Of a stretch of 64,000 nucleotides of DNA, positions 1-53,174 are shown piece after piece (within the stretch, counting starts at the first letter, position 1; each line of letters begins with the position of its first letter). A program made the position numbers and the translations under genes. This DNA is from Ylistrum balloti (taxonomy: Eukaryota): positions 1 to 64,000 of the forward strand of contig NW_026782096.1 of the NCBI RefSeq assembly GCF_031769215.1, in the 5' to 3' direction. The notes beneath the pieces are model-generated. The model saw nothing but the letters and a program-made list of their open reading frames with translations, ran no database searches and had not been told where the DNA came from.

Positions 1-38
1 ACATTGAAAAAGTGTGACAGCAAGTGTATTATAATAAA

Positions 39-464
39 GGAGGAGTGCCAATTTGGGCCTTCTGGCGGCCATGACCGATATTTTTTATTTCTTGTGTAGG
101 AATTCCTTGGGGTTAGGCGGTCATGATATGACATAAAATTAAGGTCAGATCTGAGCCATTCATTAGTTATGGGGGGGTAAAGTGGGGGGTAAAATTCATA
201 AACAGCTCCATTATGACAAACCTACATTATATTTTTGGATTTTTTCTTCTTAATTTTCATGTAATAATCCACATCAAAACATTCATTAGTAAAATTGATT
301 GAAAAAAATATTCCATTGTTGAAAAGTAGGTCATGGTAATTAAGCTCATTAATTGCTAATTATATTAAAGATGAACTTAATTTTCTGCCTTAATGCACAT
401 AAAAACAATACCTTTATCATGTGTCATGCTTTAGTAAGATTTATTTTTGAATACTTTATAGAAA
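39..464 (+). repeat. Left terminal inverted repeat
   Basis: 39-422 is the reverse complement of 3222-3614 except for 2 substitutions and a G7 vs C16 homopolymer. 423-464 matches 3180-3221 at 33/42. Confidence 0.95.
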
Positions 465-987
465 ATGGAGAATTAATTAATGGGAGGGGGCGGGTTCACA
501 CTTTTGACAACTTTTGGTTGATATCAGAGTTATCTTATGTAATTATATTAGATAATAAATATCTAATAAATAAATGTTAAATTGTACTGCATTAAGAACT
601 GTTTAAAATAAATTGCTTGATAAATGTAGAGATATTTAAACCAGTTTGGTACGACTGGTTGAGCTTTAAGCTAAAATGGCGGGATATAATGCCATCCCCT
701 GACATATACCTTGTTAAGGATCTTTGTGTCTACCGGTGAGTATACATGTGCACCTTGTCTCAGACAGTTCATATACCCTTATATATACAATTAATACGTG
801 GCAACTACACTTCACAACCTCAGCGATTTTAGTATACTTTCTTGGTTTGACTGTCACTGATATTGTACATATAATTTAGACATATAATTGTAATTCAACT
901 GTTGTTCATAATTTTGTTCATCCAAATTAAGGTTTTAATAAGGAGTGTTTTCTAAGTTTATGCCCTGTTTTCTTTTCTTTTATCAAT

Positions 988-3012
988 ATGCCAGTGCACA
1001 GGCAGTGCGCTTGTTGTAAAGCACAATATAAAGTAAGGCTCTGTTGTCTGAATAAAACAGACATTCTGTCTTACTTGAAAGCAAATATTAATGATGCCTT
1101 AAGGTTTGGTGACCCCGTATGTAAAAAATGCAGGGGAAGATACTACAATCACCATTCATCTACTGAACATCCTAGTAGCGATGTAGAGCACCAGCTTGAG
1201 TCACCTGAAAACAAAAAAATCAAACTTGACATTCCACGGGCTACATTAGGTGAATCTCGATGTTTCATTTGTAAAATGTTAAGAGAGGAATGTAAAAGTA
1301 AAATGGTAATGCTCTCAACAGAAATGAGAGTAAAGATTTTTATTAAGACAGGTATCCTTGTCCCAAACACCTGCAGATGTTGTTCTTCCCACATAGTGAA
1401 TGGTGATTTCCCATCTGATAGTCTATCTTCACTCGCATATTCCAGCAAAGACACTGAACTGGATTCTTCTGAAATATCAGAGATCCTTTTGACACTTAGG
1501 GCAGCTGCTTCAAAGAAAAGTTGTTTAGACTTTGATTCCTCAGATGGATTAACTGATCAAGATTACTACCGTCTCACAGGTCTGTATAAAAATCAATTTT
1601 CTGACCTTTTACGATCAGTTAATCCCTCTCTTTACTCTACACTGAACAGAAGCGCAAGGACTGCATTAGCCATCCTGCTTGTAAAGTTGAGGACTAGCAT
1701 GTCTTTATCAATATTAGCTTCTCTGTTCAACATGACAAAGAGAATATGTGGAAAATGTATTCATTCAGCTCGCCAAGCATTGATGACCCACTTCGTTCCT
1801 TCACACCTTGGCCTGCAACACATCACTAGAGAACAAGTAATTCAAAACCATACAACGGTATTTGCAAGGAAGATGTTTGCCTCTGGTGAAGATGTCGCTA
1901 TAGCTGTTGCTGATGGCACATATATTTATGTTGAAAAGTCCAGCAACTATACTTTCCAACGACGCTCTTTTTCGATGCACAAAGGACACCCTCTCCTGAA
2001 ACCAATGCTTCTTGTGGCCTCAGATGGCTATATACTGTCTGTCCTAGGCCCATATTTAGCAGACGGTCGAAATAATGACGCCAACATTACAAAACACATG
2101 TTGAAAACTAACACTGAGAACATCAAGGATTGGTTTCAAGATGATGATGTTCTTGTCGTTGACAGAGGCTTCAGAGATGTGACAGAACTGTTGAATGATG
2201 CTGGCATCAAAACAGAAATGCCATTTTTCTTGCCAAAGGGGCAGAAACAACACACACATACTGAGGCAAACGAATCTCGTCTTGTAACAAAGGTAAGGTG
2301 GGTTGTGGAGTCGGCAAATGGGCGGATTAAGCAGTGGAAGACCTTGGGACATGTTTTGCCCAACACTCTCATTCCAGTTGTAGGTGATTTTGTGAGAATT
2401 GTGTGTGCAATTTGTAATGCTTTTCGCCCCCCACTTGCCTCTGATTCTCCCAATGACCTCATCATTGCTGAGCGAATGTTGGCTCTGTCAAAATGTCCCA
2501 ATAAATTGCAAATTCAAGTTGAAAAAGAAGGTTTGGCTAGGAAAAGAGCCATATGGGTCAAGCTTGATGAGGCCAGTTTGCCTGACTTTCCTCAGCTGAC
2601 AGAACCGGAGTTGAGAGATCTTACCATGGGAGTATATCAGTTGAAGCAGGCAAAGTCATATACCATGGAGCACTTGTCTGAAGATGGCCAGTATGAATTA
2701 ATGGCATGCAGGGAAAAGCCTGGCTTAATTAAAGTTCAGATTCGTTCCAGACATGTTGCTTCGAAACTGTACAACCTGTGGATTGAGTATTCCCCTGGTT
2801 TGACTCCTATATCTGGTTGGTATTGCCAGTGTAAGGTTGGTGCCAGGGTAGTGGGCTGCTGTGCCCATATTGCATCTGTTCTCTGGTACCTTTCTTATGA
2901 GCGACACCAGCCTAGGATAGCACACCCAACTGCCTCATCAAGCTACCTCAGCTGTGCTGATGACGCAATGATGATTGAGGACTGGTCTGAGTCTGACAGT
3001 GACAATGAGTAA
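988..3012 (+). CDS. DDE transposase (IS5/Harbinger/ISL2EU-like catalytic core) with HTH, N-terminal Cys-rich motifs and C-terminal SWIM zinc finger, 674 aa
   Basis: Uninterrupted ORF. Catalytic motifs ADGTYIY, VVDRGF and RWVVESANGRIK. HTH-like segment LLVKLRTSMSLSILASLFNM. SWIM-type YCQC...GCCAHIASVLWYL. Several CxxC pairs at the N terminus. Confidence 0.93.
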   Translation: MPVHRQCACCKAQYKVRLCCLNKTDILSYLKANINDALRFGDPVCKKCRGRYYNHHSSTEHPSSDVEHQLESPENKKIKLDIPRATLGESRCFICKMLREECKSKMVMLSTEMRVKIFIKTGILVPNTCRCCSSHIVNGDFPSDSLSSLAYSSKDTELDSSEISEILLTLRAAASKKSCLDFDSSDGLTDQDYYRLTGLYKNQFSDLLRSVNPSLYSTLNRSARTALAILLVKLRTSMSLSILASLFNMTKRICGKCIHSARQALMTHFVPSHLGLQHITREQVIQNHTTVFARKMFASGEDVAIAVADGTYIYVEKSSNYTFQRRSFSMHKGHPLLKPMLLVASDGYILSVLGPYLADGRNNDANITKHMLKTNTENIKDWFQDDDVLVVDRGFRDVTELLNDAGIKTEMPFFLPKGQKQHTHTEANESRLVTKVRWVVESANGRIKQWKTLGHVLPNTLIPVVGDFVRIVCAICNAFRPPLASDSPNDLIIAERMLALSKCPNKLQIQVEKEGLARKRAIWVKLDEASLPDFPQLTEPELRDLTMGVYQLKQAKSYTMEHLSEDGQYELMACREKPGLIKVQIRSRHVASKLYNLWIEYSPGLTPISGWYCQCKVGARVVGCCAHIASVLWYLSYERHQPRIAHPTASSSYLSCADDAMMIEDWSESDSDNE

Positions 3013-3179
3013 CTATGTGTACGACCATTGTATGTATAGTGGAGTGAAATGCAACACTAGAGGTTAAGATTGATATCTTTCATTAGCCATTTCTGTGTTA
3101 ATACTTCGGTAAAACCACTAGATACAGACATATGGTCAAAGTTGTCGAACTAAAATTCAAAGCACCGCCTCTTCTTTGT

Positions 3180-3614
3180 TTTCTTTAAAGTATGCAAAAA
3201 TATTTCTTATTAAAACATAGTACATGATAAAGGTATTGTTTTTATGTACATTAAGGCAGAAAATTAAGTTCATCTTTAATATAATTCGCAATTAATGAGC
3301 TTAATTACCATGACCTACTTTTCAACAATGGAATATTTTTTTCAATCAATTTTACTAATGAATGTTTTGATGTGGATTATTACATGAAAATTAAGAAGAA
3401 AAAATCCAAAAATATAATGTAGGTTTGTCATAATGGAGCTGTTTATGAATTTTACCCCCCACTTTACCCCCCCCCCCCCCCCATAACTAATGAATGGCTC
3501 AGATCTGACCTTAATTTTATGTCATATCATGACCGCCTAACCCCAAGGAATTCCTACACAAGAAATAAAAAATATCGGTCATGGCCGCCAGAAGGCCCAA
3601 ATTGGCACTCCTCC
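3180..3614 (-). repeat. Right terminal inverted repeat
   Basis: Reverse complement of 39-464, compared by eye. Confidence 0.95.
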
Positions 3615-4427
3615 TTTGTGTAATAATACATTCAAAGATATTTGCCTTAATAATCAAAACCATTAAGACATTTTTATCGTCTTTGTTGAATACATTCTTA
3701 ACACATAAACTAAAGTTATATTTTATGGTTGATAAGTACCATGTACATGTATTGAAACAGAAAATAATTGAATCTCAAAATCTATGGAATTCCGCCAAAA
3801 AAAAAAAAAAAAAAAAATAGAAAGAAAGACGAAAGTTAAAATCTGTTGTCCTGGAAGATTAAGCATCCTTTATTTCTTCGAGGATATCAACCATGTAACT
3901 TTTAGTCAACCGTCACGCATTCTAACTATCATCAGACACGTGCATCTTCACATCACAAGTAAAAATAGAATTTACCATTGAGATCATTATTATGTCAGTA
4001 AACTTGGTCGAAATATCGATATAATCGGCTGATGCAGAGTGTCTGTTGGGTCCTTGATTTCTTATTCTGATAAGAATACACAATGGACTTTGAAAAAACA
4101 AAAAAAACTATGTCACAGAGATGCTTTAAACAGGAAAAATGGCGGAAGAAGATTGTTCATCCCTATCGAATGTATCATACATCAAGGACGAAATAGGTAA
4201 ATTGTTTGTTAATGGATATACAGTCCGTTCCTTGAACTATTCCACTAGGTCGTGATTTATAAGATTGATGGCATAAAAACACACTCAATATGTGTCTGAA
4301 AATATGTGTTATTACCACGTGGGGCGTTAAACCCAGCAAACTAAGGGTAATCTATAAAATAAGTAATGTTTCTAGACTTTGATACAAATATACATACTTA
4401 CATCCACTTACTTACTCCCATTATCAT

Positions 4428-9399: not shown

Positions 9400-10745
9400 G
9401 TATCATTGACATTAAACGACGTCGTGGCATATATAACATATTATTGATATTAAACGACATCGCGACATATATAAGATAGTCACTGACTTTAACGACATGG
9501 TGAAATACCTCGCTATATTATTTTTCATTGACATAAAACGACACCATTACATATATATCAATGACATTAAACGACGTCGTGGCATATATAACATATTATT
9601 GATATTAAACGACATCCCGTCACATATAAGATATCAGCGACATTAAAACCACATCTCGACATGTATAAGACAATATTGATGTTAACTGTCATCGCCCGAA
9701 AGTAAGTTATCATTGACATTAAAGACACCGCAAAAGAAATGATATATCACTGACTAAAAAGACATCTTGACATATATTAGATAAAACTGATATTAAACGA
9801 CATGGTTAGATATATAAGATAATACTGACATAAAACAACATCGCGACATATATAAGATATCACTGACATTAAACGACATCTAGATATATATATAAGTTAT
9901 CACTGACATTAAAAGACATCTTGACATATATTAGATAATACGTATATTAAACGACATGATGGGATATATTAGATAATACTGATATTAAACGACATGGTTA
10001 GATATATAAGATAATACTGACATAAAACAACATCTTGACATATATAAGATATCACTGACATTAAACGACATGGTGAGATATATTAGTAACATAAAACGAC
10101 ATCTTGACATATATAAGATATCACTGACATTAAACGACATCTAGATATATATAAGATATCACTGACATAAAAGACATCTTGACATATATTAGATATATAT
10201 ATTACATGATGGGATATATTAGATAATACTGATATTAAACGACATGGTTAGATATATAAGATAATACTGACATAAAACAACATCGCGACATATATAAGAT
10301 AATACTGACATTAAACGACATCTAGATATATATATAAGATATCACTGACATTAAACGACATCTAGATATATATAAGATATCACTGACATTAAACGACATC
10401 TAGATATATACATAAGATATCACTGACATTAAACGACATCTAGATATATATAAGATATCACTGACATTAAACGACATCTTGACATATATAAGATATCACT
10501 GACATTAAACGACTTCGCGACATATATAAGATGATACTGACATTAAACGACATCTTGACATATATAAGATATCACTGACGTTAAACGACATCTTGACATA
10601 TATAAGATAATACTGACATTAAACGACATCTTGAAATATATATCATTGACATTAAACGACATGGTAAGATATATTAGTAACATAAAACGACATAGCGACA
10701 TATATAAGATATCACTGACATTAAACTACATCGCGACATATATAA
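9400..10745. repeat. ~38-bp minisatellite (~35 units) starting at and running downstream of the NXPE stop codon
   Basis: Consensus gatatcactgacattaaacgacatcttgacatatataa. The array decays toward 9400. Confidence 0.95.
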
Positions 10746-11514
10746 GATAGCATTTCGTCTGTAACATCTGTCATTGTGTTGGTAGGCGGATGCGCGTCTA
10801 CATTTTCGTTTCCAACAGTACGGTCCCAGTTATCGATGTAGAAGACTTTATTGTGTATTCCCATGAACTCTTGGAACCATATGTCCTCATGTCTTCGCCG
10901 AATATAGTCAAGGGGTTCAAGACTGTCTTTGTACGTGATAGAATGTGGACCTTGTATGATAACTGTAGAATCTGGGGCTCTTCTTAGCAGACGATCAACG
11001 CCAGCACGTGCGTCCTTGACCAGGGCACGAAACACAGACAAAGTTGTCCTGGTGAGATGATAGTACAGATGTATGATGACTATTATTGGTTTATCATGAG
11101 GTGTCCTGTCCAGCCAGTTTCCAACTGACCGCATTGTGTCAAGCGGTTGATGAGGACCAACATAAAATGGTGGGTTATGAGGAGCCCACATCAAGTCTAT
11201 ATTACGTTTTATGTTCCGCGCCATTAACAGCTTGTGCCAAGGTTTTTCTTTCGTGTAATGATCCGTCAGAGTTTTTGATTTAGTCTTTGAACAGAAAATA
11301 GAATAGACTGATCGACTATTTGAATCACCCAACACTACAAATCTCTTATTATCCAAGCAGGTATCGGGCCGACTTGTGCCAAGTGTACACTTCCGGTTAA
11401 TCCATGTATTCTTAAAGTAATAGCCGACAGGTGTGATATCATTCCATGTTGCTTTAGGCATGCGCTCCTGACAAGGTCGTGGCGGTGAAGGCAAGTATTC
11501 AGGATAACCAATTC
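10721..11514 (-). CDS. NXPE: NXPE-family gene, exon 4 (PC-esterase/SGNH-like domain). Full model complement(join(10721..11514,12615..12664,13709..14455,14800..14870)), 553 aa
   Basis: Motifs VVLGDSNSR and NVDAHPP, and C-terminal LSYIC. The acceptor ttatttaaAG follows a pyrimidine tract. Exon lengths 71+747+50+794 = 1662 nt, with compatible phases at every junction. Confidence 0.92.
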
Positions 11515-12614
11515 CTTTAAATAAACGGAAAAGAATGTTAATAGTTGTCACAATATTGCAAGGAGTTTTGTTCTAACTCATCAAAGACTTTCAAAGGACA
11601 ACGAGGAAAAATATATGTAAATACTTTTTATATATGACATACATTCCAAGAAACTGTCATTGGTATACAGCTGCATCCTTAAAAACAACACATGACAATT
11701 TTGAAATATTTTACACAACATCATCACTTTTTGAACTTCTGCTCCATGCCGCGTTTCAATTGCAATGAATTTAATTGGTGGCATCAATGAACAAGAATAA
11801 TATGCGATATCGTATATTTTCAACGTATATAAGGAGCTGGTTAAAATTCTGAAATCGCAGAAACAGGATCCGTACTTTTATATAATATTGTGCATTTATT
11901 GTATTGAGTTAATATCCGATTTGCTTCTACAGGTATAATCTAGTTCATCAGTATTTAGTTTTATTTGATAAAATAATTATCTTGCCAGATACACTCGCAT
12001 ATACAACTTGACTGATTAGGGCATTTTTCTCCAGTTATATCTTGATTGACAAAAATATAGAGAATATTGACGTGAAAACAAAACAGCACTTCTAACTCGA
12101 AATCGATTCAGACATGACGCATTAATGACACAAGAAAGCGCAAGGGGTGTGCAAAGGACACTCAAGTGCCGCGCACTATTTAATACAAAAATAAATAAAG
12201 ACGCAGTATAACCAAAGTATGGATTAAACTGTATCATACAGTCGTTCTAGGACTCATCAGTAACGCTAAGGGTTTAAATCTCAAAACCTAATCAATATTC
12301 TAGTTTTTCCGAAGAGTAAGCAGTTCGTGTCTCTTGTAATGTTTTCCCCACAAAGCTGACTGAGGATAATGCCAGCTCTACAGAATTCCACGACAAACCA
12401 ACACACCAACATATTGCACAAGAAAGCAGAACTACATCAAAAGTTATCTTGTTGAAAGATTGTATACAATGTTTCGTGTCAATTTGTCTATAAAATAGAC
12501 AGGTATGTATTTGTCTATATGTGGCAAATATATATGAATTTAGATATTTAGAATTTCCAAAACACGTCAATGACGTCATACAGATCATACTCGCTTGCCA
12601 ATAATATAACTTAC

Positions 12615-12664: not shown

Positions 12665-13708
12665 CTGTAATGAAACAAATATAATATATGCTATTTATCT
12701 ATGTATGTGAAATTTGATACAGAAATAAGTAGATGGAGTAGTAAAGATGTTTGCAATAAAAATGTAGTATTTATGTACAACTCAATTACATTACATACTT
12801 AAACGCAGCAACAAGCGTTACCTATTAATAAATGTCTAGCATAGCTATGCAGTAATATGTATAATAAAACCAATTACATTTGACCTAACAAAGCTGTTAT
12901 TGGTAAAAGATCCAGAACGATTCCATTGTGATGTCATAATTTCATACCGTCACATACATCGTGACGTCACCAAAGAAAAACCAAGAAATTTTTGAGAAAA
13001 AGAAAAAAAGACAAATAAACAAACAAAACAAATCAACCCACCCTTCCCTCACCCCCTAAAAACAATAAAACAACAAAAATGAACTAAATACACAATGAAG
13101 GACCAAGATTAGGTCAAAGTATATAGTTCTATAATCAGATGCTGCAAGAGAAGATTGTCTTACAAATTTCTTAATTATTTGTAGGAACACATCATCAATT
13201 AAAGAGTTAACCTGAAATACAGTTTTGTCACGACAGCCTCTCCATTTCTAAGATTGCTGATAACCACTTCTTCTATGACTAATGTCTTAAGAGATATTTT
13301 GTATTCAAAAAGATTAATTTTTGTTAATGCACCAAAATACTTAAAAATAAATGATTCTCTTACAGGAAACAGATGTATGGAAATCATCATGATTATGTGT
13401 AATAAAATCACGTTTAGTTGTGTATGTATCTCATCTCTCGACATTATGCCCAGCGTTCACCATCCTAGAAATAAAGTTTAATGTTCTCAGCTCTAAGTAG
13501 GGAGGTATTCAAAATTCTACATCACTGAAAATTCGAGAGTCCATATGATCATTGCAACGACTTATATTTATTATGACTGTTAAATTAACATAAATGAATA
13601 AACAAAACAAAACAAAAACAAAACAACAGCAAAAACAAACGAACGAACGAATGAACAAAAACAGGAAATTCTACTGAAATGCAAAATCTTGGACAACTAT
13701 CTACTAAC

Positions 13709-14455
13709 GTTGAAATATGCCTTGTTAGGTCACTGATCATGCTTGTTTTATTAGCTTTCACAGTTTTCATGTCTTTACATGTCACAAAAGTAGACTTTGG
13801 TTTACAACAAAACCATGGAAGTCCATAATTTTGCTTGGTCAAGTTACATCTATCCGCCAATGTACATCCTTTTAAAATGGCGTCGTGTTTCGGGCTGCAT
13901 TGCGTTTCTTCCTTATATCTACCACTCGGGTCTATGAACTGAGAAGCCATCATTTGTAGCAGCCCATGTTCATTCACATACTTCATAATAAGCGATATGT
14001 GATGTCGTGAGTTAGCAACTGACACTATGACCTCTGGACGACCTTTCCATGGTAAGAGTAGTACCCCAGTATACGACCCATTTCTGTGATCTAAGACGTA
14101 TCCATTGACGTTGGCTTTGATCTTCGTCTCCTTTAACCATACTCTGAGGAAGTCACCACCGGTACTCACAGGTTTACCGTCTGTGCCAAACAGTCGGATT
14201 CTTATCCTCAAAGTGTCTCCAATTCTTAATGGGAAAGTTGTTGGTAACACTAAAATTTCAGACAGTCTTACAGACAAAAAAATGTTATCGTTTGTAACAT
14301 TCATCTTTTGATAAATATCGATTTCTTCTGTACCAGAAGAAGACTTTTGAAAGTTCATGTCAGTATGTGATATCAGAATACTTGGTCTCTTTTCGTCTTT
14401 CCCATGTATTCCGTAGGTAGGAAGTTTAGCAAACGCCGAGTCAGACCAAATCTTC
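13709..14455 (-). CDS. NXPE: NXPE-family gene, exon 2 (filamin/Ig-like neurexophilin region)
   Basis: GGDFLRVWL...NGYVLDHRNGSYTG and PWFCCKP motifs. tttctAG acceptor and GTTAGT donor. The frame is open throughout. Confidence 0.9.
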
Positions 14456-52397: not shown

Positions 52398-53174
52398 TTG
52401 CCGATTTTCCGTCTCCGTGAAACTACCTATCAAAACTGTATATGGGTGAGAAGGCGGCGACAATCGGTCTACCAAAACATACACGGTCAGTTGGATTTAT
52501 AGTGGCGAAGTCATTACCCTCTCCTCCAGCTAAAACTGGCGATCCTGTCTGTAGTAGGACTTGACTCTCAGTTGGGGCTTACATACAAGTTTATTATTCA
52601 AAAACCAAATCCAAATATCTCAATATCTTTAAAGCAGAGAATTTACTAAATTTGATAAGTCTGATAATTACATATAAACTTAAAAACATTAATGTTGTCC
52701 GCATGTCGAGTACACATAATGTTATGATATTAGAAAGGATGGGTAGGTGACATTCTAAGACGAAATATGAAATGCCAATATTAGAACATAGATTTATAAC
52801 CAATGGTGGTGATCTTCCTATAGGTAATTGTCCTTCAGTGTACACAACACAGATGTTAACTGCTAACTTCTTATTATCGCGGTGTTATTTCTTCCGCTGC
52901 TTTCGAGGGTGAAATGATATCGCGAACATTCGATATATTGTCCGTTTCAGGTGGAAAAGACATATTTTTGCATTAAAAAAGATACAATTTCGAATAAAAA
53001 CCCAAAGTACAATTTGTCTGTCTTCACTATATATGTGTAGGAGTTCCCTCCCTTCTCATCACATTACGATGTCCTGTATATATCCAGTATTAGGAACAGA
53101 ATATCCTCCATAAATAGTAGAAATTAACATTCGAAATGAAATGCCTCGGTTTGATAGTTTGAATCCTGACTTGA

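Follow-up and report, generated by a model that had tools for sequence, protein, structure and literature searches.

A young, high-copy Spy-group transposon family in Ylistrum balloti, inserted between AAA and TTT

We analyzed a window of 64,000 nucleotides of Ylistrum balloti DNA (assembly GCF_031769215.1, contig NW_026782096.1, positions 1–64,000 of the forward strand), near the start of which lies a DNA transposon with long terminal inverted repeats and a single intron-less transposase gene. Read directly, the element proper spans 39–3614 (3,576 bp), beginning with GGAGGAGTGCC at 39 and ending with GGCACTCCTCC at 3614, and it is flanked by AAA at 36–38 and TTT at 3615–3617 (Table 1). The original prediction, made from the sequence alone, had described a Spy-type element at 36–3617. 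The element is real, but that range takes in both 3-nt target half-sites; the AAA and TTT flanks themselves are present as predicted. So is the uninterrupted 674-amino-acid open reading frame (ORF) with three DDE catalytic residues: 988–3012 is open on the plus strand with no internal stop, and D309, D392 and E441 are invariant in the alignment of 44 relatives, insects included, in which we scored conservation. It is the only long sense ORF in the element, and the other ORFs of at least 80 amino acids within 39–3614 are all antisense and lie inside the transposase gene.

Table 1. Features of the element and its flanks, in window coordinates
Feature	Position	Strand	Evidence and remarks
Left target half-site AAA	36..38	.	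Host DNA outside element; 32/34 family left flanks AAA; element-free satellite units read AAATTT; absent in consensus-identical copy
Spy-group DNA transposon, 3,576 bp	39..3614	+	Inverted-repeat arms; at least 40 near-full-length copies at 98–99% BLAST identity; 240 genomic termini
Left terminal inverted repeat, begins GGAGGAGT	39..472	+	Core 39–422, weaker stretch to ~472
Transposase ORF, 674 amino acids, intron-less	988..3012	+	ORF listing and Pfam; nearest non-self relative 54–55% identical, 317 relatives scored
Cys4 motif, N-terminal (C7, C10, C45, C48)	1006..1131	+	C48 invariant; C45 in 43/44 relatives; C7 and C10 in 39–40/44
C2CH motif C92-x2-C95-x36-C132-x2-H135, THAP-like spacing	1261..1392	+	Four residues invariant in 44 relatives
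Putative helix-turn-helix region, residues 227–265	1666..1782	+	Pfam HTH_Tnp_4, E 0.075
DDE catalytic domain, residues 309–477	1912..2418	+	Pfam DDE_Tnp_4, E 1.2e-17; D309, D392, E441; D82D48E
Codon 334	1987..1989	+	His in window copy, Arg in family consensus and 42/44 relatives
SWIM-like motif, C-terminal, C613-x-C615-x9-C625-x-H627	2824..2868	+	Three Cys invariant; His in 43/44 relatives
Right terminal inverted repeat	3172..3614	-	Core 3222–3614
Right target half-site TTT	3615..3617	.	TTT in 34/34 readable family right flanks

The terminal inverted repeats are ~385–435 bp long. An ungapped inverted-repeat search returned arms at 36–177/3476–3617 (100% identity) and 171–472/3172–3473 (95%), with similarity fading between ~423 and 472. 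Gapped end-to-end alignment of the first 384 nt gave two substitutions (at 357 and 396) and one 9-nt difference in a G/C homopolymer, exactly the differences predicted over ~385 bp; the C-run at 3467–3475 in the right repeat has 9 C more than the family consensus. A search for sub-repeats within these long repeats found only short two-copy matches at chance level.

The family search covered the window's own 648-Mb assembly and recovered at least 40 near-full-length copies at 98–99% BLAST identity, homopolymer length accounting for much of the 1% difference. The terminal 27-mer, allowing up to two mismatches, occurs 240 times in the genome, or ~120 copies, against 0 for a reversed control, and the matches are therefore not due to chance. 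Some of the 240 termini form pairs of element ends only 2.06–2.11, 3.09 or 3.32 kb apart; the pairs of perfect family termini at 2.06–2.11 kb (G000:C135:78545–80655, C419:107072–109133 and C772:69195–71268) are likely internally deleted non-autonomous derivatives. For the flank and divergence work, we built an alignment of 29 full-length copies and their flanking DNA, and inspected the sequence of 10 additional copies.

Of 34 left flanks of family copies, 32 are AAA, and of 34 readable right flanks all are TTT, the pattern that had been predicted for genomic copies. Two apparent exceptions, L002 and L023, proved to be losses of 1 and 3 nt from the element's own tip. Outside the triplets, the DNA is unrelated between copies, and in no copy do the left and right flanks form a direct repeat. 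There is a mild symmetric preference for a pyrimidine at -4 (22/30 sites) and a purine at +4 (22/30, of which 15 are G). One copy, L004 (G000:C226:1852472–1859057), is inserted in a 55/56-bp satellite and so offers both filled and empty sites. The filled site reads GGTGGTAAA–element–TTTCACTGG, or at greater length ...ATGTCGGGTGGTAAA–element–TTTCACTGGTCTGATG..., and the intact satellite units read GGTGGTAAATTTCACTGG, in the context ...ATGTCGGGTGGTAAATTTCACTGGTCTGATG... (more than 10 neighboring units) or ...GGTAAATTTCAC.... The intact units already hold AAATTT, and therefore AAA and TTT are target DNA, with nothing duplicated or lost upon insertion. The satellite itself, at L004 1–1503 and 5084–6586, has a 111-bp higher-order unit, extends for at least 3 kb and contains one AAATTT per unit.

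These sites bear on two other ways of reading the ends. The triplets are complementary, extend the inverted repeat and accompany nearly all copies, and they could be taken for the outermost bases of the repeat of an element that inserts with neither sequence preference nor duplication. We consider this most improbable: triplets owned by the element would be missing from the satellite units, which instead already read AAATTT at the L004 position, and two copies lack AAA, including the one identical to the consensus. The same empty-site test in silkworm, which defined the Spy group, gave the same answer (PMC4122938). The satellite answers the refuting condition, stated with the original prediction, that the triplets belong to the inverted repeat.

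Almost as improbable, in our judgment, is an ISL2EU or strict PIF/Harbinger element with a 2-bp (AT) or 3-bp duplication. ISL2EU elements make a 2-bp duplication, usually AT, and often carry a second ORF with a YqaJ exonuclease; PIF/Harbinger elements make a 3-bp duplication and need a second, Myb/SANT protein (PMC4122938). The transposase falls in the same Pfam family, sharing with PIF/Harbinger the DDE_Tnp_4 catalytic domain and an AT-rich target preference; published trees place ISL2EU as sister to Spy, the C2CH motif of the window protein is reminiscent of the N-terminal THAP finger of ISL2EU, and Repbase originally listed oyster Spy elements under ISL2EU. However, the ends of the window element show no direct repeat, the G that follows AAA excludes an AT duplication, no bases were gained in the satellite, and 39–3614 contains no second sense ORF of at least 80 amino acids that could encode either YqaJ or Myb/SANT.

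In the description by Han et al. (2014), Spy elements insert at AAA/TTT and contain a single long ORF whose product has D(79-80)D(44-62)E spacing and an N-terminal helix-turn-helix; their inverted repeats vary from 9 to 1,474 bp and carry a 'relatively well conserved' terminal GGANNNNG (PMC4122938). A 2015 paper defined the PHIS groups by target duplication rather than by spacing. In the window family we found the AAA/TTT target, no duplication (at one satellite locus), a single intron-less DDE ORF of ~700 amino acids with an IS5-like catalytic domain and an upstream helix-turn-helix, and long inverted repeats starting with GGA, all in an invertebrate host, as in other Spy elements. Diaby et al. 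widened the group in 2024 to 182 elements in 172 species, with four mollusc entries, the two from scallops being fragments of 284 and 372 amino acids without repeats (PMC11304231).

An indirect link to a published Spy element runs through the ant Cyphomyrmex costatus, which encodes a protein 49% identical to the window protein over 95% of its length. At its locus we read AAA, then GGAGGAGGGTC...GACCCTCCTCC, then TTT (outermost ends GGAGGAGGG...CCCTCCTCC), with inverted repeats of ~300 nt, the terminus GGAGGAGG and D82D47E spacing. The 2024 survey lists Cyco-Spy in this species, with a 352-bp repeat, the AAA/TTT motif and a length of 3,461 bp, versus the ~3.27 kb that we measured (PMC11304231). 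The ant locus and the window family share the GGAGGAG terminus, the flanks and repeats of ~300 nt or more, although the proteins are only 49% identical. By its description, the active cgSpy of Colletes gigas, with 467-bp repeats, resembles the window family in having long repeats. Overall, the window protein is at most 54–55% identical to anything in the searched collection and 42–49% identical to named relatives, the nearest of which belong to species in which Spy elements have been published. A quick maximum-likelihood tree, built without outgroups, groups the window protein with four unnamed proteins (support 99), in a group sister (support 97) to insect proteins that include those of the ant and Leptopilina, all of them among many bivalve proteins. 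An oyster locus (L035, encoding P0077, whose 685 amino acids match the length of the published Crgi-Spy) yielded no clean 37-nt repeat pair and was therefore set aside as a bridge to published elements.

The genome is rich in Spy-like transposases: a first search with a Pecten maximus protein returned 1,120 candidate matches. They include a second Spy-like lineage of about eight open frames of 702–721 amino acids, 55–57% identical to the Pecten maximus protein P0032, for which 57% is the highest identity in this genome (G000:C258:1567685–1569730, C49:4999–7044, C959:43707–45752, C712, C1121 and C737).

The copies of the window family are very similar to one another. Measured against the majority consensus of the 29 aligned copies, they carry from 0 (L005) to 18 (0.50%) substitutions, ~0.3% being typical and the window copy having 8 (0.22%); mean pairwise divergence is 0.62%. 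Because copy-to-copy divergence is so low, the family is young. The variable columns comprise 231 singletons and 42 shared changes, and this excess of singletons is the star pattern of one recent burst, as judged from the aligned sequences. The original prediction had also argued for a recent copy, from the similarity of the left and right repeats. The youth is borne out, with copies 0–0.5% from the consensus, but that argument for it is not: both left/right substitutions also occur in the family consensus and so are not mutations of the window copy. Insertion of a cut-and-paste element does not involve copying one repeat from the other, and repeat similarity therefore cannot date the window copy.

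Six of the 29 copies retain an open frame (L001, L002, L003, L005, L006 and L014), as does L015 with a 9-nt in-frame loss. Several copies with broken frames have lesions in common with a copy inserted at a different AAA/TTT site: L025 and L029 a 14-nt deletion at 2268, L007 and L020 an 8-nt deletion at 1336, L010 and L024 a stop at codon 31, and L004 and L009 a 1-nt deletion at 2427 along with 7 substitutions. Each of the four pairs has 3–7 derived substitutions in common besides the lesion. The same lesion at different sites means that the lesions are older than the insertions, and therefore that the transposase that moved the broken copies was produced elsewhere. Defective copies of this family were thus mobilized in trans.

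L006 (G000:C765:523501–527078) and L012 (G000:C412:1225994–1229569) form a pair of another sort. They have a left flank in common (148 nt at 97%, within a ~27-bp tandem repeat) as well as four derived substitutions, every one of them to the left of element position 1024; their right parts are unrelated, as are the right flanks. From these sequences, the pair looks like the product of recombination or duplication, the breakpoint falling within the element between ~1024 and 1285.

The flank table, the empty satellite site and the kinship to the ant element together bear out the prediction of Spy-type insertion without target duplication, and we are confident that window 39–3614 represents one complete member of a new, high-copy and very young cut-and-paste family of the Spy group (PHIS superfamily). 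It is a new family and not a new kind, Spy being already known. Several observations nonetheless count against this assignment or against an active family. Two left flanks are true exceptions, with TTC (L005) and TGC (L018) in place of AAA. The satellite is a single locus with an empty site, its unit recurring many times within it. The first D spacing of D82D48E is 2 residues longer than the reported range, with the second inside it; a spacing of 82/47–48 is found in 39/44 relatives, the ant protein included, and one of 80/48 in the oyster protein P0077. The terminus GGAGGAGT is not a perfect GGANNNNG, having the GGA with T at position 8 and G at 9. Membership in the Spy clade is supported indirectly, by the ant link and the target behavior, as our tree had no labeled PHIS outgroups. 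The frame is broken in 22 of the 29 copies, with many lesions outside homopolymers. Arg334, within the catalytic domain and Arg in 42/44 relatives, is His in the window protein alone. Finally, neither an empty allele of the window copy, which would read ...ATAATAAATTTGTGTAA..., nor a second haplotype is present in the assembly, where the 806-nt right flank is unique; with no empty allele there, present-day mobility is therefore unproven.

Some of these points raise the possibility that the family is the dead relic of one recent burst and the window copy an inert fossil whose frame is open by chance. Besides the 22 frames with frameshifts or stops, the histidine at residue 334 and the lack of an empty allele, replacement changes outnumber silent ones by ~2.3:1 among copies, as expected without constraint. 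On the other side, one copy shows no difference from the consensus at any aligned base, the consensus protein is encoded by three copies, divergence from the consensus is only ~0.3%, and for 13 of the ~40 loci a contig end is found within 5 kb, a distribution compatible with heterozygous insertions but not proof of them. We regard a dead family as unlikely, though it is by a wide margin the most serious of the alternatives considered here.

For the window copy, the prediction of an autonomous, mobile element fares unevenly. Its ends are intact, and as DNA it can probably be mobilized; autonomy is the weaker part of the claim, since two changes, G237S and R334H, separate the window protein from the consensus protein, and the latter, at a near-invariant Arg, may weaken the copy's transposase. 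Other copies look like likelier sources of transposase, with L002, L003 and L005 encoding the consensus protein. A database protein reported as 100% identical (P0001) turned out to be the consensus form and not the window's own: it is encoded on four contigs from outside read sets that have the consensus bases at both 1696 and 1988 and include no element flanks.

The element also coincides with breaks in the assembly. The window copy is only 35 nt away from the start of its contig (C239). When contig C224 is read in the reverse direction, its start is seen to repeat the left flank of the window copy (from base 2939 of C224 onward) and the first 2,935 nt of the element. C224 and C239 therefore overlap inside the element and should be joined. 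More generally, 13 of ~40 near-full-length loci within 5 kb of a contig end compare with ~2% expected, and seven contigs end within the element (loci at contig ends include C239:1, C224:1, C261:1, C809:3, C84:1, C819:1, C639:253 and the ends of C26, C765, C780 and C541). Either heterozygous insertions or repeats breaking the assembly could produce this excess.

The transposase has conserved Cys/His motifs on both sides of its catalytic domain. All three motifs (Table 1) are kept in the 44 aligned relatives, insects included. In the 2014 description, most Spy transposases appear to be without a zinc finger (PMC4122938), and apart from that remark the three Spy papers make no mention of SWIM or zinc modules. 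The Pfam SWIM profile (PF04434) matches 16/44 relatives weakly and below threshold (best E 0.0014), with no match for the window protein; in an atlas search with residues 560–645, SWIM-carrying clusters score 0.94, and two relatives are named 'SWIM-type domain-containing' in UniRef. The helix-turn-helix profile HTH_Tnp_4, weak in the window protein (E 0.075), matches 37/44 relatives (best E 4e-7), and the AlphaFold2 (AF2) model is helical at residues 190–297, the helix-turn-helix region included.

THAP fingers follow the C2CH rule C-x2-4-C-x35-53-C-x2-H and adopt a beta-alpha-beta fold. C92-x2-C95-x36-C132-x2-H135 fits this spacing without a Pfam THAP match. An AF2 model of residues 78–160 (predicted local distance difference test, pLDDT, 86) has the P-element THAP finger 3kde as its top match, a weak one at Foldseek E 0.94 and Z 3.0; ZAD fingers do equally well against it, and all of these matches are weak (Z at most 3.0). 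The whole-protein model (pLDDT 83) gave only weak generic Foldseek matches to DDE transposases and integrases, and a sequence search of solved structures found no match for the whole protein or for residues 78–160. The conserved zinc-finger-like motifs would be a modest addition to what is described for Spy, with no change of kind.

These parts suggest how the element might move. The 674-amino-acid protein would combine an RNase-H-like DDE domain with zinc-finger-like and helix-turn-helix DNA-binding parts before it and a SWIM-like finger after it. After binding to the long terminal inverted repeats, the transposase would excise the element, and both ends would be joined at the same position on the two strands, in the center of the palindrome AAATTT, leaving no gap to fill and hence no target duplication. 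Such blunt, non-staggered joining, which has been proposed before (PMC4122938), is a chemistry that we infer, as are the roles of the finger motifs and any continuing movement of the family. A more far-reaching proposal, which we put forward only tentatively and do not favor over its alternatives, has two parts taken jointly: that Spy transposases as a group carry three zinc-binding modules (Cys4, THAP-like C2CH and C-terminal SWIM-like), one of which perhaps reads AAATTT or assembles the blunt-joining complex, and that the window family is still mobile, its insertions differing between the two chromosome sets and interrupting the assembly at 13 of the ~40 loci.

The original prediction had suggested that a scarless, single-ORF element would be of interest as a tool. 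That value is no longer new, as the bee (Colletes gigas) and oyster (Crassostrea virginica) Spy transposases were found in 2024 to be active in human cells, integrating at AAATTT without duplication (PMC11304231). One Spy element is already under development for gene delivery. The present family is a natural resource for dissecting which features of the protein and the ends are important, with ~120 copies that diverge by ~0.3% from the consensus, long repeats similar to those of the most active Spy element known, several copies encoding the consensus protein and evidence of movement in trans; the conserved Cys/His motifs supply concrete residues for testing target choice. To our knowledge, Spy elements are the only cut-and-paste transposons without target duplication. 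For the host genome, the family marks recent, possibly ongoing insertion and explains several contig breaks.

Three minor features of the window complete the description. At 3007–3012, TAAC follows the last codon of the transposase frame twice (GAG TAAC TAAC) in most copies and once in the window copy and four others, leaving the stop codon unaffected. About 7 kb from the element, exon-sized ORFs on the minus strand at 10721–11551 and 13585–14358, with matches to NXPE4_C (E 1.2e-47) and Neurexophilin (E 8.7e-7), look like a host NXPE-family gene. At 51150–52484, also on the minus strand, a 444-amino-acid ORF of PT disordered repeats (Pfam PT, E 6e-64) lies in a low-complexity repeat region, with long overlapping ORFs on the opposite strand.

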